Positions 33,143 through 46,800 of a stretch of 64,000 nt of DNA are shown here, piece by piece. The notes under the pieces are model-generated. The model searched no databases and was not told where the DNA came from. It was given only the letters and a program-made list of their open reading frames with translations. The stretch's first letter is position 1; the number at the start of each line of letters is the position of its first letter. The translations under genes were made by a program, and so were the position numbers. The stretch lies in assembly GCA_010909165.1 (NCBI GenBank), contig VJWM01000044.1:806001-870000 (forward strand), written 5' to 3'. Source of the stretch: Anthoceros angustus (lineage: Eukaryota; Plantae; Anthocerotophyta).

Positions 33143-35232
33143 ATGGACCCGGACGAGGCCAAAGCGACAAGCACCTTCAATCCAGTGGGCTGGGAGAGCC
33201 TGCAAGATGGCATGGTTGGCTCCAATGACGACAAAACCATGACCGCAGACGGATCCATCGACCTCCGAGGCCGCCCCATAAGCAAGCTCAAGACCGGCGG
33301 ATGGAAGGCCTGCTTCTACATTTTCGGTACCCCACGGCAGGCACAGTTTTATGCAATCTGTGATTGATTGCATGTAAGATTAGAATTGCTTCCTTCCTTG
33401 CCAGTTTCCGCAAGCAATGCAACATGATTCCTGCTTGCCAACGCTCGCCTTCCATTCCCAATCGCGCTGCACGCAGGGCAGGAGACAGCGGAAAGGATTG
33501 CGTACTACGGCATCAGCTCCAACCTGGTGACGTATCTCACGACTGAGCTGCGGGAGGGACTGGCTACCGCGGCCAAGAACGTGAACAACTGGAATGGAAG
33601 CGTCTTCTTGTTCCCGATCCTGGGAGCGGTTGTGGCCGACTCGTTCCTCGGCCGCTACTGGACCATCGTCATCTTCTCCCTCGTCTACGCGCTGGTAAGC
33701 TCAAGCCCTTCCTGCTCCACCTGAGATGCCATTCGCAGCAGCTAGGGCATAACATGAACGACATCCATGGCTGAGCTCGAGCTTGTCCGACCTCTTTGTA
33801 GGCCGCCTTGATGCTCACGGCAGCCGTGTCGCTGCGGAGCCTGAGGCCCCCGCCATGCACCGCAAGCTCTTGCAAGGCGGCATCGCGGGGGCAGGTGGCC
33901 GCCTTCTACTTCGCGCTCTACCTGATGGCGGTCGGCAACGGGGGAATGAAGCCGTGCCTGTCGGCCCTTGGAGCAGACCAGTTCGACGAGGAGGACGAGC
34001 GGGAGCGGAAACAGAAGCTCTCCTTCTTCAACTTCTGGTACGTAGCCATAGCCATAGGCATCCTCTTCGCCGTCACCGTGGTGGTGTACATTCAGGACAA
34101 CGTCGGGTGGGGATGGGGTTACGGGATCCCTACGATGGCTTTGGCTCTAGGCGCGCTCGTCTTCCTCCTCGGCACGCCGTGCTACAGGCACAAGCGGCCG
34201 CTTGGGACGCCGCTGTTGCAGTTTTTCCATGTCTTTGTCGCCGCAGCTCGTTCCCGGCCGCGGCCATCCGCAGACCTCTACGAGCACCCGCCGCAGCACT
34301 ACCACAAGACGGGCAGGAGGCAAGTCTTGCATACCGACACTCTCCGCTTCCTGGACAGAGCGGCGGCCCGGAGCAGCCCTTGGGAAGAAGGCTCGGAGAA
34401 GAATCCATGGCGGCTGTGCACGGTGACGCAGGTGGAGGAGGTGAAGGTGTTCCTGCGCGTGGTGCCGATCTGGTGCACCAGCCTCATGTTCTCGGTGGTG
34501 TACGCCCAGGGCTCCACCCTCTTCGTGAAGCAGGCGGCCACAATGGACGCGCGGCTGGGGCCGGGGTTCACCATCCCCCCGGCCTCCTTCGCGATCTTCT
34601 CGGTGCTGCCCTACCTGGTCGTCACGGTGGCGTATGACAGGCTTATGGTGCCGATTCTAAGGAGGTGGACGGGGCATCCGCGTGGAGTTCCGATCGTGGT
34701 GAAGATGGGGGTCGGGATGGCGTTCTCCATCCTGGCCATGGTGGCTGCTGCGGTCACGGAGGAGAAGCGACTGCGGGTGGCCAGGAGCACCGAGCCCGGG
34801 CGGGAGCTCCCTTTCGTCCCCATGTCCGTCTTCTGGCTGCTGCCGCAGTACGTGATCATGAGCTTCGCGGACTCCTTTGCCATCATCGGGCAGATGGAGT
34901 TCTTCTACCAGGAGGCCCCGGACCACATGAAGAGCGTGGGCACCGCGCTGACGTTGGCCTTGACGGGACTGGGGAGCTTCCTGAGCAGCGCGCTCGTCTC
35001 CATCACCAACAGCGTGTCAGGCCGGCACGGCAGGCCGTGGATTGGCGATACCATTGACAATTCCAGGGTGGACCGCTTCTACTGGACCCTCGCCGTGCTC
35101 AGTGGGATCAACCTAGCTGCCTACGCCTACTTCGCCGCCACCTACACTTCCAGAACCACGCAAAGCGCTGCTCCTGCTCATGAACCTGAACCCGCTACAG
35201 CCGTCTTGGAACTGGCAGTGGCCACACCATGA
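33143..35232 (+). CDS. NRT1/PTR family (NPF) nitrate/peptide transporter; exons 33143-33326, 33477-33694, 33802-35232
   Basis: KTGGWKACFYIF; ETAERIAYYG (ExxER motif); GAVVADSFLGRYWTI; GNGGMKPCLSALGADQFDE; WRLCTVTQVEEVK; WLLPQY; EFFYQEAPDHMKS; DRFYW. Confidence 0.95.
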
Positions 35233-36349
35233 CGATCCCACTAGCCCTCGGGTGCCTGCCCGCCTAGGGTTCGAAGCTGTCTATGCCAGTTGATCTACAT
35301 GGGCTGGGGTGGGTCTTCCCCGTAACTCTAGCCCACCGTAGCATGCACGACCTGAAGAAATGGAGCCTTCCAAGGTCCTCGCATTCGAGCGTACTGTCCC
35401 GATGGATGCACGGCCTTCCCGAAATGTAGCTCGTGCTCTTGTGCATGGTCCCAACCCGGTGACAAGACCAGAGCGAAGGCGCTGAAACGAGGCGAAGGTC
35501 GAATTCATGGTGAGCTTACTAGCCATTCAGGAACACGACCCACGCTCCAGTTTGTGGTGAATGATTTTGGGCCAGCTGGTGTCCCGTACGCGTGATGTCA
35601 CAGTGGTTACAGCGGCCGGTGATACTAAACGGGAATTCCAACGTATATAGACTAGTTAGGCTAACGGATAATCCTACATAGCCTGAAGGACTCGAAAGAG
35701 GCAAGAACGTTGGGGCCCGATCACATTTTGGCCACCCATTCTCCAATTCGGAGAGCACAAGAATTCCCCGTTTTCAGCTCGAAAGTACTTTGTTAGTTGG
35801 CACCTACAAGAGGCACCAGGGCCATTTGCTGCCTTGTTGAGACATGAACAGAAGTATTCAAAAGATAACTTTACTCGCTGGCCAGAAGAAGATTAAGAAG
35901 ATCTATCTTTTGAATCTAATAATAGATTCAAAAGATAACTTTGAATCTATTATTAAAGGACGCGGGTGCTTCTCTGGCATATCGGGATGCAATTGATGGC
36001 TAGGGAGTGGGGTTTACATGCTTTTGGGAAATGGGTTCCATTACATTGTCTGAACATGATTTTTGTGAGTGTTTACATATTGTTGACCCCTTGAGTGTGA
36101 TAATATGGCCTCTTCCTTTTAGGCCTTTTATAAAGCTCAGTAGAGAAAATTGCGCTTTGCACAGGCCTTCTTTTACCGTTCTTTTAGCTCATGAAAGAAA
36201 TTTGCTCTCCAAACATGAAAATATAAAAGTAGTTTAATTATTTCAGTGAACCCGCGTATGGGGAGAAAATTAAGCTTTGAACATGCCTTCCCTTACCGTC
36301 CTTTTAGCTCACAAGAGAAATTTGTATTCCAAACATGAAAATATTAAAG

Positions 36350-37180
36350 TAGTTCAATTATTTTCGTGAACCTTCGTCTAGGCAGGTCTCCGAATCGTCC
36401 ATAAAGTAAAACTAGAACTACAAATTTATTCTCCTTGCCAAGAATTGAATCCGAATCTAGGCCAGTCTCCAACTCTAGGCTAGTCTTCGGGTCGCGAACG
36501 TCCACAAAGTAACAGTAGAATTTCCAAATTATTCTCGTTTCCAGGAATCGAATCCGAGTCTAGACCAGTTAGTCTCCAGCTCTAGGCTGCTCTCCGGGTT
36601 AGGATGATTCTCGTTAAGGAATCGAATCCGGGTCTAAGCCGGTTAGTCTCCAGCTCTACGCTGCTCTCCTGGTCTGGATGATCCTCGTTGCCGGGAATCG
36701 AATCCGGGTCTAGGCCGGTTAGTCTTTAGCTCTAGGCTGCTCTCCGGGTCGTGATCATCCAGAAAGTAATCGTAGAACTTCAAAAAAATTATTTTTGTAG
36801 CCAGGAATCGAACCAGGGTCTAGGTTGGACAGTCTCGAGCTCTAGGCAGGTCTCTAGGTTGTGATCGTCCACAAATTAACACGAGAACTTTAAAATTATT
36901 CTCATTGCCGGGAATCCAACTCGAGTCTAGGTCGAACTTCGGGTCGTGATCGTCCATAAAGTAACAGTAGAACTTCAACTTCAATATTTTTCGTCACGGG
37001 AATCGAATACGGGTCTAGGCACAGTCCCGAGCTTTAGGCTGGTCTCCGAGTCATGATGTCCATAAAGTAATAGTAAAACTTCAAAATTATTCTCGTCGCC
37101 GAGAATCGAACCCCGGTCTAGGCCGGACTCCGGGTTGTGGATGATCCGAACCTACGTACTTAAACCACCATACTACAACA
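36350..37180 (-). repeat. Tandem array of degenerate tRNA-like units (left block)
   Basis: Repeated ttattctcgttgccgggaatcgaa(t/c)ccgggtctagg (rc contains the B box GGTTCGATTCC). Nearly complete unit at 37092-37180. Confidence 0.8.
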
Positions 37181-37183
37181 AAA

Positions 37184-40100
37184 AACACGATAATTTTTGA
37201 AGGGGGTGAATAATCTCGAAGAGGGTTTTCTGCAAATAATCTCTGAAGGGGGTTTTTGATGGGCTAAAACAGTTGAGAAGGCATTGAAAAAGCGGCTCGA
37301 AAAAAGGGTGTCACGCGATGTTACTACTTTCCATCCAACAATGTTTGTGGGGAATGGTGGTCGTGGCTTCGAACCTAGGGAATAATGCAAAGTAGGAGCG
37401 GTGAGGGCGGGCGGCCGTTCTGCCGGGAAAAAGACGGTAGCTTCGATTTTGGGAGAAAAATGTGGTTTAGGAAGGACACAACAAAAGCCCACGTGTTCCC
37501 ACGTACATTAACGTAAGAACAGGACTTACAAAATTAACTGGGACCCGGTAAAAAATGAAATTTCATTTTCACTCATCCCCAGAGTTCAATCCTTCGTCAT
37601 CACCGGGTCCGACTTCTCACATTGTCATCACTATCTTAATGCTGACTCTTGCGGGTTATATGAAGCCACGCAACTCATGAGCTTATCCCTTATCGCTTTT
37701 GTCCACCGCATATAGATGTTTCCGTCGTTCAACACAAACCCATAGTATGTGATGACGTTTTCATTCACAAATACCTCCCGTATGTTTTCGGTAATGGACC
37801 TTATTCCTTTTTCCTCTCATTGGACCGGATGGTTACCACCACAGCGGACTATGTATTCTGCACATATCTCCCTTCATACGCATCCGTGTGGTCGGTCCGA
37901 TACCATGGAGAAGAAAGTGAGGTCGTGGCGCTTTTAGCTTCACGTCAATGACCTCCCATTCCGAGCGGCGGTGCGTCGTAGCCGACAGGCGCGCCGGACA
38001 CATCCCCTCGGCCCGTTATGGCCGGCGGCGCCACCATCCACGCTGCGGAGCGGGTGGGCGGGCGGCCGGCCGGCACCCTCGCCAGCGCACCACCGAGGAG
38101 GCCCAACGGTGGCGCGTGGAGGGCGGGCGCCGGCCGGCCGCCCGCCGCCGCACATGTCGGGCGCCGCCGGCGGCCGTCTACCACCCGCCGGGATACCGAC
38201 GGTGCCGCGTGGGGAGAGCGCCGGCGGTGTCGGGCGGGCGCCGCCGGGCGTCGCCTCTGCGCACCACCCGTCGGGATACCGACGGGTGCCTGCGTGGGGA
38301 GAGCGCCGGCGGCCGCGCCACGCCACCCCTAGGGTGGCGGCCCGCTGGCAGTGTATGCCCTCTGCGCACCACCCGCCGGGCCACCGACGGTGCCGCGTGG
38401 GCGCCGGCGCCGCCGCCCCTCCGTCGCCATCCGTCGGGGCCCGGCGGGTGGCGCGCGGCCGGCGCCATCATGGTGGTGCCGCCCGGCGGCCGTCCGACGC
38501 CCTACCTCGCGCGCCACCCGTAGGGCCTCTCGAGTCGGCGTGGAGGGAGGCGCCGCCGGCCGGCGCCTCCACGGCACCACCATGATGGCCACATACGGGT
38601 AGTCGCGGCGCCGGTGGCGCCCGGCCCGCTCAGTGATACACTCGGGAGCCACAAGCGGGTGGCACGCAGAGGGAGGCGCCGCCGCCGGGCGCCGCGCCAC
38701 CCGTTTTAATGAGAATGCGCGAGGGATGACGGCGTTGTTGCAATAGCTGTTCCTTTCGTGGAAAAGTATAGGATATTCTTCGCTGACCATTCGGATTGCA
38801 TGCAGCAATTGAAGGATGTGGAGGTCTTGTCGAAACTTCCCGAGGAGTTTCGCCATTTCATATTTGAGATCAATAATTGGAAGGGCTTGGAGAATGAGCA
38901 GCGGGCTTTAGCAGACAAGGACTTGCAAGAGGGACTCCACGTTTTCAACGTTCCATCGACTGAAAAGCAGGTCCAGTACCAGATCGAAGGACGTAATGTT
39001 CTTGACATGCGTGGTTATCTGCGGGGAAGGAGATACACTTTGCTTGTCATGGACGTCCCCCGTGGCTTTGACATCGGTCCTATGGACAAGCGCATGGATT
39101 TGGCCATGTTGGGAACAGTTTTTCAGAGTTTTGAAGAGAAGACCACCAGCGAGGAGTTCAGGCTTATCGTCTTGCATGGAGTTGAAGAAGCCCACACAGT
39201 CAGGGAGTCTATGCGGAAATTGTGTGGGAAGGGAGGCATGGTGTCCTTCATCTGGGACAAGACAAACATGAATAATGACAGAGGCGGATTTGAGACTATC
39301 GAGTACGTGACAGTGGGATGGTGTCTAAAAGCAGGTTGTGCGAGAGACTGGGTTCCTATGATGCCTAACGCCATGCATGGGACTTTCAACAATGGAAGGA
39401 CAGTTATTGGGCACCATGCGTCAAGTCGGGTCCACCTATCGCACGACAAGCTGGTGGTATGCCCTTACCAACGCCCGCTAGGCCTTATGACAAAACTTGT
39501 CAAAACATTCTCCAGGGAAGGATATTGGGTTGTGGATGCTTGTGCAGGGAGCGGCACGACAACATTGGCAGTACTGTTATGTGGCCGGAACTGCATTGCG
39601 ATTGAAGCCGATTTGAGGTGCGCGGGGTACATTGAACAACGCATACATGGTGTACAAGTCCTACCCGGAGGAAGAGCTAACGTTCGAGCCGCATCGCAGG
39701 GTCCATCGATTACGGGCAAAGGAGGTTTGCATAAGTGAGAAGGATTGCCTTACGGCCAAGTGGTTGCATTGAGTGCCAGAAGGTTGAAGACCACGAGTGG
39801 CGACCTTTTGGATGAGGGTCAGCAAACCCTAGATGCTGTGTGGCAGTCCACACCGTCAGACAATGGGCCCAGGAATGATACTATCGAAGACGAGCAAGCA
39901 ATGGAGGAGAACGATAACTTTGAGGCGGAAGATATGGACCGCCTCCGGAATATGGCGGTGGTTCTTGACTCAGTGTCGGTGCAAGGCATGGATGAGTCCC
40001 CAGGCCGCACTCTTCAATGAGTATTGTCGATGCCGATGACCACTCCCTCCTTTAGTAGATGTTTGTTGCAATGTTGTTACGACGATTAAAATGGGACTCC

Positions 40101-40413
40101 CTCTAGTACAGGATTGTTTTTATTGTGTTCCACCACTTCAAAGTAAAAGTTTTCGGTTGTACTAAACATATGAAAATGGCAGCCCTCTAAACATTCTACA
40201 AAAATGCAGACGGGCCCGCACCCTACTGTGCTCCATTTCTAGGGTGTTCACTTGAAAGTGTGGCATTTATCACTGGTATGACCTCAGAAAGGGTGTGTGC
40301 ATTATCAAAGTAGGGCTAATACGCTGTTTTAGGTAAGGTGTTCTTCGTGACAAGGGGGTGCTGTGTCGACCGAAGGGGGTTAGTATATTCCCCCCTTCAA
40401 AAATTATCGTGTT
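37184..40413. mobile_element. ~3.2-kb TIR DNA element carrying a DNA methyltransferase ORF; no transposase recognised
   Basis: Left end AACACGATAATTTTTGAAGGGGGTGAATA; right end TATTCCCCCCTTCAAAAATTATCGTGTT (inverted match). AAGGGGGT subterminal motifs. Flanks are A-rich, so the TSD is ambiguous. Confidence 0.78.
38758..39738 (+). CDS. Beta-class N4-cytosine/N6-adenine DNA methyltransferase-like ORF (N6_N4_Mtase); 5' end unresolved, possibly decayed
   Basis: Motif IV-like LLVMDVPRG (DVPR at 39052-39063) precedes CPYQRPLGLMTKLVKTFSREGYWVVDACAGSGTTTLAVLLCGRNCIAIE (motifs X, I, II). Intronless. The same frame resumes after the TGA (39745-40020). Confidence 0.8.
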   Translation: MEKYRIFFADHSDCMQQLKDVEVLSKLPEEFRHFIFEINNWKGLENEQRALADKDLQEGLHVFNVPSTEKQVQYQIEGRNVLDMRGYLRGRRYTLLVMDVPRGFDIGPMDKRMDLAMLGTVFQSFEEKTTSEEFRLIVLHGVEEAHTVRESMRKLCGKGGMVSFIWDKTNMNNDRGGFETIEYVTVGWCLKAGCARDWVPMMPNAMHGTFNNGRTVIGHHASSRVHLSHDKLVVCPYQRPLGLMTKLVKTFSREGYWVVDACAGSGTTTLAVLLCGRNCIAIEADLRCAGYIEQRIHGVQVLPGGRANVRAASQGPSITGKGGLHK

Positions 40414-41553
40414 AAAAACAACAACTTTATTTATGTCCACGGAGGATGGAAGGACCATCATGGGGCAACAAGTTTGGTGTTTGATATAGATGTTCACAAC
40501 ACACTTATAAATTCATTCAAGTTAGGGTTAGGGTACCGCAATTTTGATCATTATATCATTGGTTTGAACTTAAACCACTATCCTACAACGAGTTTGGTGT
40601 TTGACATAGATGTTCACAACATACTTATAAATTCATTCAAGTTAGGGTTAGGGTACCGCAATTTTGATCATTACCGCGTTTTTTTGATCATTATAGCCTT
40701 TCCACAACATGAGAGACAATCTCACTCCCAAAGTGAAAAAGACATGAAAAGAAAAATTATTCTCGAATCTGGGTCTATGCCAAGAAAATGCCAAGAGTAC
40801 CACAATGTTGATCATTACCGCGTTTCTTTCATCATTACTTGTACCATGGTATGTCCCAATGGCATACGCCAAATGGACACACATTTATACATAGATGTTC
40901 ACAACGTTCATTCAAGTTTGGGTTAGGGTACCACAATGTTGATCATTACCGCTTTTCTTTGATCATTACTTGTACCATGGTGTGTACAAATGGCATAGGC
41001 CAAATGGACACACATTTATAACGTCGCAGGATTAAGCATCGTGCGCTTAGATCGGTACTTAGATGGGGTGCTTGAAGGGAGTGGATGCCCTTGGTGCAAG
41101 TCAGTGGTACCATTCGTCCTTAGTGGACTTAAATAAAATTCTTCTTCTTCTTCTTTCCGCATCATGAGAGACAATCGCATTCCCAACGTGAAAAAAACAT
41201 GAAAAGAAAAAATTAGAGACAATCACAATTCCAACGTGAAAAAAACATGAAAAGAAAAAATTAGAGACAATCACAATTCCAACGTGAAAAAAACATGAAA
41301 AGAAAAATTATTCTCGTTTGCCTGGAATCGAACCCGGGTCTAGGCCGGTCTCCAGGACAATCGCATTCCCAACGTGAAAAAAAACATGAAAATAAAAATT
41401 ATTCTCGTTGCCTGGAATCGAACCCGGGACTAGGCCGGTCTCCAGGACAATCGCATTCCCAACGTGAAAAAACATGAAAAGAAAAATTAGAGACAATCAC
41501 AATCCCAACGTGAAAAAAACATGAAAAGAAAAATTATTCTCATTGCCGGGAAT

Positions 41554-41644
41554 CTCGTTGCCGGGAATCGAACCCGGGTCTAGGCCGGTCTCCGGGTCGT
41601 GGACGATCCCGACCTACGTACTCAAACCACTATACTACAACGAG
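41554..41644 (-). ncRNA. tRNA-Asp-derived 91-nt tRNA-like gene, copy A
   Basis: CTCGTTG TA GTATAGTGGTTTGAGTAC G TAGGTCGG GATCGTCCACGACCCGGAGA CCGGCCTA GAC CCGGG TTCGATT CCCGG CAACGAG. Perfect acceptor and T stems, A and B boxes. Confidence 0.7.
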
Positions 41645-41762
41645 TTTGGTGTTCAACATAGATGTTCATAACATACTTATAAATTCATTCAACTTAGGGT
41701 TAGGGAATCATAATTTTGATCATTACAACATTTGATTGGTCATTATAGTCTGTAAAATTATT

Positions 41763-41853
41763 CTCGTTGCCGGGAATCGAACCCGGGTCTAGGCCGGTCT
41801 CCGTGTCGTGGACGATCCGGACCTACGTACTCAAACCACTATACTACAACGAG
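41763..41853 (-). ncRNA. tRNA-Asp-derived 91-nt tRNA-like gene, copy B
   Basis: Same fold as copy A; followed by AATAATTTT (TTTT at 41754-41757, Pol III terminator-like). Confidence 0.7.
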
Positions 41854-43536
41854 TTTGGTACTCAAACCACTTTACTAGAACGAGTTTGGTGTTCAACATA
41901 GAGGTTCATAACATACTTATAAATTCATTCAACTTAGGGTCAGAGTATCATAATTTTGATCATTACAACATTTGATTGGTCATTATAGTCTTTTAGCATC
42001 ATGAGACAAAATTGTACGCCCAAAATGAAACAAAAAATTATTCTCGTTATCAGGGATCAAACTTGTCCAAGCTGGGCACATTTCAATCCTTTTAGCCACA
42101 TGAGAGACAATACATCCCTTTTAACCTTGTGAAAGAAATTCAACAACAATTATTATAACTTTATTTATGTCCGCTAAGGGTGGAAGCACTACCATGGGTC
42201 AAAAATGGTACAACGTAAAAGAGGTGGAAGAAACTAGTACGTCTAAACTAGAGAGAAAGAAGTAGCAACTAAGAAAGTGTTGTAACATAAGAAAAATTTG
42301 GAAAAAGAATTGCATTACAACCCTTTAGCCTCATCAGAGAAAATAGCGCTATGACCTTGAAAACAAGGTTATTCTCATTACTGAGAATCAAACCTGAACT
42401 CAGAATCAAACCAGGGTCTGGGTCGTGGATGACCCGACCTCCGTACTTAAACCACTATATTACAACAACAACAACTTTATTTAGATTCATTAACAACGAC
42501 TTTGGTGTACCATGTAGATGCTCATAACGTACTTATAAGTTATACAAGTTTGAGTTTAATTTTTTGCCTCACTTAAGAACTTTGCCCTCCCAAGATAACA
42601 TGAAAAGCAAATATGAGACTATAAAATTATTTTCGTGGAATCGACTCCGGGTCTAGCCGGTCTTCGACTCATGGACGATCCGACCTACGTACTTACTGAG
42701 CACATATACAGCAACGAATTTGGTGTTCTATGTACATGTTAATGACATACTTGTTTCTTGAAGTTCATGCACGTTCATTTAAGTTAGATTAGGGTATTTC
42801 ATGTTTGATTTAATTCACAATTAATGTAGATGTTCATGACATACTTGTTCTTGAAGTTGATGCAAGTTTATTTAAGTTAGATTAGGGTATTCCATATTCA
42901 ATAATTGATGAAGATGTTCAAGACAGACAAGTTCATTCAAATTAAGTGTGCACTACAAATTAAGTTAGAGTTAGGGCATTGCTTGTTTAAATTTGATCAT
43001 GATTGTTGAAAATTTACGAGATACATAACGTCATGTGGTAAAGTATGATGAGTCAGTTTACCAATTAAGCGAAGTATGAGAACATGTTTCATGTTGTGAG
43101 TAAAGTGATAGGACTTTCTCCACAATATGATCATGCTTGAAGGAGCAAAAGTGAAACAATATAATTTAGTTTCGTTGCTAGGAATCAAACCCTGGTATGT
43201 CTCCAGGTGCTGGAAGATCCGGTCTCTGTACTTGAACCATTCGCACTAAGAGTTTGATATTCTTGGTAGAGAGATAAAATATATGTTCATGGCATACTTA
43301 AAAATCTAAGTTAGGTGAAGGTGCAAGTTTGAGTACTATCACAATAGTCCTTTTAGTATGTGGGTCATGGATGATGTTGCCTATGTACTTAACCACCCAC
43401 CATACTAGAAGAATTTTGATATTTTTTGTGGATGTTTACAGCACACTGAATTCTATTATTTAAATTAGGGTTAGGATATATCACATTTGAAATTTATGGA
43501 GATTGCTGCGGAAGTTCACGATATAATTTTTCACGG

Positions 43537-43590
43537 CATACTTTTTGGTGATTACATACTTTTTGGTGATTACATACTTTTTGGTGATTA
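43537..43590. repeat. 18-bp tandem repeat x3 (CATACTTTTTGGTGATTA)
   Basis: Directly visible. Confidence 0.85.
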
Positions 43591-43872: not shown

Positions 43873-46800
43873 TCAGGTAGACGAGCTGCTTCTCCTCTTC
43901 CTCCTGAGATTTCGCACCGCTTTTATGCCTGGATCTGTCACGGGTTCGTTGTCCCAGTCTTGGAAAGCAGCAGAACTGAGTTCTGAAGTCCGTATGGGAT
44001 CACTTGCTATATCCTCGACAGAAAGGATTGCAGCATTCCCAGCGTCCCTCTCCACGGGTTGGTCCATGGCTGAGTTCGCAGCGTCCTGATCCACAGGCTG
44101 GTCAAAGCCTGAGTTCGCAGCTTCCTGGTCCATGGCAGACTTCATGGCTGAGTTCGCAGCTTCCTGGTCCATGGCAGACTTCATGGCTGAGTTCGCAGCT
44201 TCTTGGTCCATGGCAGACTTCATGGCTGAGTTCGCAGCTTCCTCATCCACAGGCTGGTCCATGGCTGAGTTCGCAGCTTCCTCCTCCACAGGCTGGTCCA
44301 CAAGGACAGCGGCTGACTCACGGGGGATGGCATCGCTGGTAGGCCTCTGCCCTCTTCGACTAGAACGCAGCACACGGTCGCTACCAGCTGCTGGATCCTG
44401 TTCCAGCTCCTTCTGCGGTGCTGTTTTAACCTTCTTGGGAGCCTTGGGTATAGTTGCTTTCCTCGCCTTCCGCTTTTTCCCTGGCGAGGTCTGACTAGAG
44501 GGAAGATCTACCATCTCGTCTGAGAGTTTCCCCGTGATAGCACGGACAGCCTTCTGGATGCGGGTGCTCCGGATCTTGGCGAACCGCTGATTGAAAGAGT
44601 AGAAGGCATCGAGGCGGAGTTGTGTCTGATTTCAAGGAGCAGCAATAACAACAGATGTGAGACGGATTTCCCAGCAAAGTGATGGCATGGAATGTCAAGT
44701 CAGATTAGCCACACTCGTCAATTACCTCACGGCGGTCGTACTCTTTGAGGACTGGCAGCAACAGCTCATCCGATTTCGCTTTGTTCCACGAGAAGCGTTC
44801 AGCACACATCCTGCGAACCCCCAAGGGACTACAGCGTAAGTCCTGAAATTCCCTGCGTGCTTCTGGCTACACTGATTCAGCAACTGAAGTACCCACTTCC
44901 GGAGAGCATCAAGATCTGGTCGTCCCCAGCTGAACGATTCTTGAGAATGGTCAACTTGCGGTTCTATGTATGCTGCCACAACAGCTTCACTCGGAAATGA
45001 TTCTGAAACAGTCCAGTTTTTGCTAACCGCTCGCTGCACAGCATTGAACGTTGTTTCCAGGCACGAAGGTGAACAAAAGCATGCATCCAGGACTCTCAAA
45101 CTTGCCGCAACATGTTGTGCAAGAGAAACAAGACGGTCCCAGTCTAAGAAATCCTTACGTGCTTTGACATAAACTGCTGTTGAAGTGCGCTTAGGCTGCT
45201 TTCCGCCTGGCCCAAGCCTGCGTCATCGCCTTCAACAGGCGTGCATCCTGCGTCAGCCTGCCCTTTCCTGCGCCTCTTATATTTCTGGGGCATCTGCTTT
45301 AGCAAAGATAAATCAGGCGAGTCAAGCCACTCCTTGAAAAGTTGGAGACCACTTTCCCCAGGGAAGGCATTCACCACTTCTATAGCATTAACAATGCCAA
45401 TCCCACTGCCCAAACCACATTAAGGAAATCTCAGAATCTGAACACTTAGTAAGACACAAACAGGAAGAAAGTGACCAGATTCAAAAGCGCTCAATGCTCA
45501 ATCATTGCTGACCTTATGCCCTCTGTATAGTCACTGCCAAGCAGCAAAGCCATTTGTATAAGCTTGTCTCTGCTTAATCCAAGTTCTGATTCAACGTCCT
45601 GTAGAAGCAAATCACTTGTCCAGCAAACGCTAAATCAAACGCAAAAGAGGCTCAAGAACCGAAAGCCTAATAAGCTCAACTGATCACCCACCTTCATGTG
45701 ATAAGTCTCCACGTACTTTCTATCATCAAAGATGTTCTTGTACACGTTCCTTCCACCGAAGAGGAACACATCACTGTCGTCTGTAACCACACCATCAACT
45801 AACCCAGAAGTATCCATGAATGCACACTGCGCCTCTGCTTCCATTGGCGCTATGATATACGGCAACCCGAACATCTGCAGTAGTTCCTGTCATCCACCAC
45901 CACAATTGTAATTCGAGCAGCAGACGTGCTCCTTAACCCGTTTCATTAACTAAATTCACAAAACTGATGCTCGTGACACAAAAATGACGAACTTGTGAAA
46001 AACTATAAACTCACTCACGCACTATGCATCTCTACCAACCCTCATGTCAGATGTCAAGGTGGCACATGACATACCTGACACTCAGCAAACATCTCTCCCG
46101 TTACATTGTCTGCATTGCGCTCATTTGTCTGCTGGGAGAACAATAACTCTGACTCCTCCCTCATGAGTGTCTCCCTCTCCATTTCCAAATTTAGTTTCTC
46201 TCTTTCCTGCTTGGCAACATCATTCGCATACATCTCGTCTGAGTACGTCATGACCTGTTTTCCTTTTTCCCGGTTACTTCTGTCCCTTGTACTGCAAGTG
46301 TTAAGTGAATCAAAGGCCTGAAAGTGAATAGTGTCCCTTTGAGAAACTTCGACCACCTCTAACTGTCCATCCATTCTCTGTGAACTGGGGGCCTCCGACA
46401 TCGGACTTGCTCTGTCATGGGACCCTAGTTGTGAAGGAGCCTTTGTCACTGGTACGTTGTCACCGGCAGTTGTTTCTGGCTTTCCAGGAATGCCCCCTCT
46501 TGAATCACCCGTGCCCCTCATGCTTGATGGCAGAAGCGGTACATCAGCAACATTCGTCTTACCATCAGAGAATCTAAGCAAGTCATCTTTCACATTGCCA
46601 TTGGCTTGCTCGAGACCTTTGTGACCTGCCCCTGCGACCTCATTTTCCAGCAAACTCATACCTACCGTGGGTTGTACATCTACATGACCTTCACAAGGAA
46701 CAGAAGGACCTCCAGCCTTTGGTTCCTCCTCCTCATCTTCCCACACTATGTCATGGTCAGTCCCATCTGCTATCCCCGATTCTGGGACTTTCAGGTTCAT

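Follow-up and report, generated by a model that had tools for sequence, protein, structure and literature searches.

A probable decaying tandem cluster of tRNA-Asp-derived pseudogenes with a rebuilt anticodon arm in Anthoceros angustus

Introduction

The closest described counterparts of the locus reported here are the tandem nuclear tRNA clusters of plants, exemplified by the tRNA-Pro and Ser-Tyr-Tyr clusters of Arabidopsis chromosome 1. Plant clusters arise by duplication at the DNA level and are largely surplus, and those of Arabidopsis are epigenetically silenced (PMC11700998; PMC13578239). The array described below shares with them the head-to-tail order of tDNA, TATA and CAA elements, T-run and spacer. 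Whereas the Arabidopsis clusters encode canonical, chargeable tRNAs, the founder of this array had a rebuilt anticodon arm, its genes are non-decoding and most of its units are fragments. The clusters listed in PMC11700998 and PMC13578239 include neither the Asp isotype nor a seed-free plant lineage.

Two classes of tRNA-related sequence invite further comparison. tRNA pseudogenes and tRNA-like sequences inflate eukaryotic tRNA counts, for example in cow, and curated plant sets (PlantRNA) exclude them (PMC13437025; PMC11700998). The genes of the array resemble tRNA pseudogenes in their covariance-model tRNA score, their lack of a usable anticodon loop and their apparently neutral evolution. 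Most tRNA pseudogenes, however, are SINE-derived and dispersed, whereas these genes are tandem, carry their own terminators and have no hallmarks of retroposition. With tRNA-derived SINEs they share a tRNA-related head, internal A and B boxes and multiplication in the genome, but they have no body, tail or target-site duplications and are arrayed rather than dispersed.

A viral system offers a third comparison. The tRNA-like units of murid gammaherpesvirus 68 reportedly produce Pol III RNAs with miRNA hairpins that are processed by tRNA enzymes and are not used in translation. The two intact genes of our array would resemble these RNAs if expressed; the viral units, by contrast, have demonstrated products and conserved partners, whereas the hairpin here is short (~8 bp) and unstable in length.

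The locus matters for annotation, since its intact genes pass tRNA covariance thresholds and receive shifting isotypes, and would therefore inflate this genome's set of tRNA genes or introduce errors into it. It also displays a Pol III gene cluster behaving as a satellite, in which fragments, transposon-bearing units and whole units are amplified alike. Were it to encode an expressed tRNA mimic, or to draw tRNA-targeting retroposons, it would represent an unusual plant Pol III RNA. Literature on hornworts, tRNA clusters and tRNA-like pseudogenes, and searches with the exact 18-mer of the family, yielded no description of it.

Results

Two intact tRNA-Asp-like genes with a Pol III layout

The analysis covers a 64-kb stretch of DNA (hereinafter the window). 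Its two intact genes, designated copies A and B, and their flanking elements are the following.

41553..41644, minus strand: copy A, an intact 92-nt tRNA-Asp-like gene with an expanded anticodon arm (ARAGORN, Rfam tRNA, cloverleaf fold)
41762..41853, minus strand: copy B, an intact 92-nt gene (ARAGORN, Rfam tRNA, cloverleaf fold)
41645..41761, minus strand: B-A spacer of 117 bp (sequence read directly), which recurs in other units
41754-41757, minus strand: TTTT terminator of copy B, in the B-A spacer, at +5..+8 from B
41694-41705, minus strand: telo-box-like CCCTAACCCTAA upstream of A, at -61..-50
41677-41683, minus strand: TTTATAA upstream of A, at -39..-33
41646-41648, minus strand: CAA upstream of A, at -4..-2
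41529..41552, minus strand: 3' trailer of copy A, a 15-nt duplicate of the gene 3' end followed by TTTTT (41529-41533)
41858..41884, minus strand: 27-nt partial duplicate of the gene 5' end, directly upstream of B (tandem repeat of period 31)

An earlier sequence-only reading of this DNA had described tandem 91-nt genes derived from tRNA-Asp; the derivation stands, and the length becomes 92 nt when the discriminator A is counted. The start-to-start period of 209 bp between A and B given there is confirmed. Both copies have a 7-bp acceptor stem (CTCGTTG/CAACGAG), a D arm with the A box TAGTATAGTGG, and a T arm (CCGGG-TTCGATT-CCCGG) with a 5-bp stem and the B box GGTTCGATTCC inside it, each at the place where it had been read before. 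The acceptor, D and T stems are perfect and both promoter boxes are intact in the two copies, which differ at 2 nt (G35C and C50A), both within the expanded arm.

A tRNA finder and a covariance model, which were among the checks proposed with the earlier reading, both detect the two genes: ARAGORN calls them, and the Rfam tRNA model (RF00005) scores A at 42.6 bits and B at 42.9 bits against a gathering score of 29. Besides the acceptor, D and T arms, the Rfam alignment includes an anticodon stem of 5 bp, with 25-26 nt standing in place of the 7-nt anticodon loop; the approximately 19 extra nt ascribed to the anticodon arm are thus placed by Rfam in the anticodon loop. Both copies exceed the threshold in a 9-kb run; when all 64 kb are run at the gathering thresholds no match results, an effect of the speed filter. 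Even at E up to 10, Rfam tRNA reports no family copy besides A and B, and Rfam finds no snoRNA or other RNA in the spacer.

Copy A has the complete set of expected elements, namely a TATA-like box and CAA upstream, internal A and B boxes and a T-run downstream. The CAA, TTTATAA and more distal upstream elements lie at or within a nucleotide or so of where the sequence-only reading had put them (about -3, about -33 to -39 and further upstream), and the TTTT that it noted just downstream of B is present. The T-run of A sits 20 nt downstream because 15 nt of the gene 3' end have been duplicated, giving a period-15 tandem repeat at 41538-41569. In copy B, a partial duplication of the gene 5' end (31 nt) shifts the TATA-like box by the same length, to about -64..-70. 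The full Pol III layout claimed for the family is therefore complete in A; in B the box set is present, but the TATA-like box is displaced. As judged from these predicted elements, the youngest units, A and B, keep all cis elements of a plant Pol III tRNA gene.

The telo-box-like CCCTAACCCTAA lies approximately 50-60 nt upstream of the gene in most units, on the minus strand (41694-41705, 40644-40655 and 40524-40535, with degenerate copies at 42800-43480), and persists in units whose gene is lost. In the founder it may have served as a promoter-proximal element, or it may simply belong to the repeated spacer.

Descent from tRNA-Asp

Both ends of the gene had been reported to match plant tRNA-Asp(GTC) closely, and this holds. 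The first 18 nt agree at 17 of 18 positions with the plant tRNA-Asp_1F forward primer (PMC6521008), the mismatch being at nt 1. The 3' end closely resembles one that small-RNA studies report, with CCA attached, for a plant tRNA. We take this plant sequence to be the 3' end of tRNA-Asp(GTC), and descent from plant tRNA-Asp is well founded on these resemblances. The 64-kb window contains no canonical tRNA-Asp gene.

Copies that retain both ends have the C1:G72 pair, which would therefore represent at most one event, in the founder. Its earlier interpretation as a compensatory change betraying a selected structure is undercut by this count of at most one founder event and by the lack of covariation in the window. 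On both strands, the founder departs from angiosperm tRNA-Asp at the C1:G72 and U2:A71 pairs, a hint of structural constraint during some past period.

An array of mostly broken units

An nhmmer profile built from copies A, B and C (the last designated below) detects 20 remnants on the minus strand between 36368 and 43239, consistent with the decayed copies that had been placed over 36350-43460. Besides A and B there are about 18 remnants, all in the same orientation, of which the main ones are listed here.

36368..37055, minus strand: sub-array of about nine 3'-half units without an A box (periods 74, 110 and 195)
37091..37182, minus strand: copy C, full length and decaying (nhmmer; below Rfam tRNA reporting at E up to 10)
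40466..40699, minus strand: two units with upstream spacer and only the first 7-27 nt of the gene (nhmmer, spacer alignment)
within 41164..41448, minus strand: two 3'-half units (41403-41448 and 41313-41359) in a 90-bp repeat (tandem repeats)
42373..42468, minus strand: copy E, with an 8-nt arm segment and a duplicated T arm (nhmmer)
42637..42717, minus strand: copy D, degenerate, 3' acceptor strand lost (nhmmer)
43172..43239, minus strand: copy F, the oldest recognisable unit, with a 14-nt arm segment and 15 substitutions (nhmmer)

Only A and B are whole. Copy C is full length but decaying: it carries 10 substitutions, nt 1 and 3 are T and one pair of the T stem is broken. It abuts an element with terminal inverted repeats (TIRs) that cuts off any promoter region. 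Copies D, E and F retain both halves yet are disrupted, two further remnants are 5' fragments, and about 12 are 3' halves that lack the A box.

The repeat unit of approximately 210 bp consists of the upstream TATA/CAA region, the 92-nt gene, the T-run and a spacer. Units follow one another head to tail in one orientation with a shared spacer, as the proposed tandem amplification implies. The 3'-half units and bare pieces of spacer build tandem sub-arrays of their own, with TRF periods of 47-48, 74, 90, 110 and 195. In the sub-array at 36368..37055 several units have an 18-nt arm motif doubled, and within 41164..41448 the two 3'-half units are followed by 47-48-bp repeats of downstream spacer alone.

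Tests for constraint

The sequence-only reading had inferred for the family a selected structure and a tRNA mimic or novel Pol III RNA. Selection of the structure, or maintenance of such an RNA, finds no support: the gene is not better conserved than its spacer, the identity of homologous pieces to unit A being 85% for the upstream spacer, 88% for the gene and 90% for the downstream part; the anticodon arm drifts between 8 and 42 nt; and broken units were amplified as readily as whole ones. Between A and B, 2 of 92 gene positions (2.2%) and 8 of 117 spacer positions (6.8%) differ (Fisher p = 0.19).

The covariation that a maintained structure was expected to leave across copies is not seen within the window. 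Among 11 copies, with a cloverleaf model that includes an 8-bp arm stem, 79.0% of cells are paired compared with 78.4% in column shuffles, of which 152 out of 500 equal or exceed the real alignment; the comparison has low power, drawing on few full-length copies from one locus of one genome. Both sides of a pair have changed in only two cells of the alignment.

Relative to A, and on the assumption that A is close to the ancestor, which sets the direction of change, 47 of 79 substitutions are transitions; 43 of these run from GC to AT, 19 of them at CpG. Such an excess would be expected of methylated-cytosine deamination in silent repeats, or neutral decay. Four units have the change G72A, whose site is the second G of the B box, a conserved position, and other B-box changes occur.

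The arm itself was compared between the anchors CCACGACC and GGTTCGATTCC. The intervening segment measures 8 nt in E, 14 nt in F, 20 nt in A, B, C and one 3' half, and 42 nt in two units near 36700-36860, where an 18-nt motif beginning GGAGAC occurs twice. Judging from these sequences, gain and loss of the 18-nt motif accounts for the variation in arm length from 8 to 42 nt.

The longer outer arm stem described earlier can form, as 8 bp, in copy A; in copy B it forms only by a register shift after G35C. The inner hairpin proposed within it (TCGT-CC-ACGA) is not supported: it would leave a 2-nt loop, and the inner pairing predicted by ViennaRNA is different and weak. Nor is the whole fold unusually stable, with z-scores of -1.2 for A and -1.3 for B, and with 25 and 21 of 200 shuffles, respectively, folding at least as well.

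We consider it likely that the locus is a decaying tandem pseudogene cluster that descends from a single tRNA-Asp gene already endowed with a rebuilt anticodon arm. Of about 20 remnants only 2 are whole, and the majority are 3' halves that lack the A box; fragments and spacer pieces are tandemly amplified, and units broken by a retroposon tail (see below) were duplicated. The arm is unstable in length, covariation is absent, gene identity is similar to that of the spacers and 43 of the 79 substitutions are GC-to-AT. Excision yields no canonical loop, and the ARAGORN call is unstable (see below). Two observations pull the other way: the stems and boxes of A and B are perfect, their sole two differences falling in the arm, where the outer stem can still form in B, and the pairs at the end of the founder acceptor stem carry the hint of past constraint noted above. 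The absence of selection refers to the 64-kb window and its few informative copies.

The repeats would be products of unequal crossing-over and slippage in the DNA, irrespective of whether the gene in a unit was whole, and A and B would simply be the youngest units of the array. From their cis elements, these two are probably transcribed by Pol III, with RNase P and RNase Z trimming the transcript and CCA being added to it; the product would be an L-shaped RNA of approximately 95 nt with a long, irregular anticodon arm. Such an RNA, if made, would have no maintained function, and the array would be eroding through methylation-type GC-to-AT transitions, deletions, internal duplications and transposon insertions.

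The same tests bear on the alternative that A and B are working master genes of a lineage-specific, functional Pol III tRNA-like RNA and that the debris around them reflects birth-and-death turnover. The product would then be an L-shaped, non-decoding tRNA mimic that might, for example, act as an enzyme decoy, give rise to small RNAs or prime a retroelement. A and B do look as such genes would, with a complete Pol III layout and no mismatch in the acceptor, D or T stem, and they diverge less in the gene than in the spacer, but this difference is not significant, covariation is absent, the fold is no more stable than shuffles, and the arm, the sole novel part, is the part that changes in length. 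As for a primer, the window has no primer-binding site for the 3' end plus CCA, the genes themselves excepted: the complement occurs only at or near family copies and as chance matches, and a canonical tRNA-Asp primer-binding site is likewise absent from the 64 kb. We therefore regard a functional RNA as unlikely, and the particular version in which an expressed, selected tRNA-like RNA of this plant lineage is kept by a few master copies per array, as a tRNA mimic or a retroposon landing mark, as improbable too. Metagenome contigs, in which plant DNA is unlikely, contained no match to a 27-mer over the junction of the arm and T arm or to a gapped pattern from D arm to T arm, and the 42-aa ORF that runs through copy A has no words in common with any called protein.

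Insertions in the array

Two kinds of mobile element interrupt the array.

37184..40413, no strand assigned: DNA transposon, not a family member, with perfect 23-nt TIRs at 37184-37206 and 40391-40413
40423-40473, minus strand: retroposon tail (tail probe)
41125-41140, plus strand: retroposon tail (tail probe)
42157-42330, minus strand: retroposon tail (tail probe)
42473-42490, minus strand: retroposon tail (tail probe)

The transposon contains an ORF with an N4/N6 DNA methylase domain (N6_N4_Mtase). It is inserted into the array, which it splits, beside copy C, and its flanks have only AAAA in common. The 3' tail of the retroposon ends with GGACATAAATAAA, followed by GTTGTTG. A 16-nt probe consisting of the tail end and the next three bases has four matches in the 64-kb window compared with 0.77 expected, and all four lie inside the array.

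Two of the tails directly follow nt 7 of the gene and split the upstream promoter region from the rest. One (42473-42490) interrupts copy E and the other (40423-40473) interrupts one of the two units at 40466..40699, the 5' part of the present copy C, which is further parted from the remainder of its gene by the transposon. From their sequences, these two tails appear to be one insertion spread by duplication of the unit. Since the junction at nt 7 is common to C and E, the unit was duplicated after the gene had been broken, and since broken units were duplicated, the array grew irrespective of gene integrity.

The concentration of tails raises the question of a role at the DNA level, in which clustered B boxes bind TFIIIC and act as a chromatin boundary, or provide a landing pad for LINEs or SINEs that seek tRNA genes; as a landing pad, the array would keep retroposon insertions away from working tRNA genes. 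The confinement of all four probe matches to the array, and an insertion located after nt 7 of a unit, fit this idea. Yet at least two tails were copied from a single insertion by unit duplication, which leaves few independent events, and the B box is not specially kept, given G72A in four units and the further changes. Such a role seems to us decidedly improbable.

Relation to SINEs and other mobile elements

Heads of a tRNA-derived SINE, or cargo of a mobile element, with the arrays as by-products of transposition, would also be tRNA-related and carry A and B boxes. The units nevertheless lie head to tail in one orientation with a common spacer, and they have no tRNA-unrelated body, no A-rich or LINE-like tail and no flanking target duplications. 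In nearly all of them a T-run terminator follows 5-20 nt past the acceptor stem, in keeping with the earlier view that this is not a typical SINE, and the only nearby inverted repeats belong to the separate transposon inserted in the array. An origin of this kind has very little probability.

Decoding capacity of copies A and B

Copies A and B cannot decode: they have no 7-nt loop, no U33 and no GUC in the anticodon position, and the GTC that occurs in the arm lies outside any loop context. All possible blocks were excised in turn from the loop region in copies A, B and C, with variable loops of 3-5 nt and two stem registers; no product had U33 and a purine at 37, which bears out the claim of non-decoding genes without a canonical U33 loop. 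An intron-containing tRNA was rejected, as no excision leaves a canonical anticodon stem-loop in these three copies. A class II tRNA of the Ser/Leu type was also rejected; parsed by hand, it would require G33 and an anticodon stem containing two G-U pairs and one A-C mismatch.

ARAGORN calls both genes Ser-GGA when introns are disallowed. With introns allowed, A becomes Trp-CCA, a call that takes a mismatched stem and a 7-nt 'intron' at 34/35, and neighbouring fragments are joined into a chimeric 'Asp' whose intron measures 317 nt. The identity set of yeast AspRS comprises G73, G10-U25 and GUC at positions 34-36. In A and B the discriminator is A73 and the D-stem pair is G10-C25; because these replace AspRS identity elements, charging of an A or B product with aspartate would, by analogy with yeast, be unlikely.

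In land plants, introns are reported only at 37/38, essentially in tRNA-Tyr and elongator tRNA-Met (PMC13578239), and a survey of 69 angiosperm genomes found no intron-bearing tRNA-Asp (PMC11700998). A working decoding tRNA, whether an intron-containing tRNA-Asp or the Ser-GGA or Trp-CCA of ARAGORN, is thus barely credible: the Rfam score above the gathering threshold is reached with 19 surplus nt assigned to the anticodon loop, and the isotypes that ARAGORN does call change with its settings and require mismatched stems.

Neighbourhood of the array

A transporter exon neighbours the array.

33808-35232: one large exon encoding an NPF/PTR transporter of the POT family (Pfam PF00854, E 6e-100), at a distance of 1.1 kb

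Its best relatives in the protein collection are 42-52% identical, none exceeding 52%, and named bryophyte, lycophyte and seed-plant matches reach at most 48%. Exact look-up of two flanking ORFs returned no record.

Downstream of the transporter gene, a 13-bp perfect AT-rich hairpin at 35905-35945 has sub-threshold Rfam matches, on both strands, to plastid ccsA-ndhD 3'UTR models (25 bits compared with 51), and is probably just a palindrome. At 43537-43590, just past the upstream end of the array, an 18-bp sequence (CATACTTTTTGGTGATTA) is perfectly repeated three times in tandem. Further on, a minus-strand ORF of 213 aa (43873-44514) without a Pfam match contains a 39-bp tandem repeat at 44051-44300 (6.4 copies, 85% matches), and may be a repetitive coding exon.
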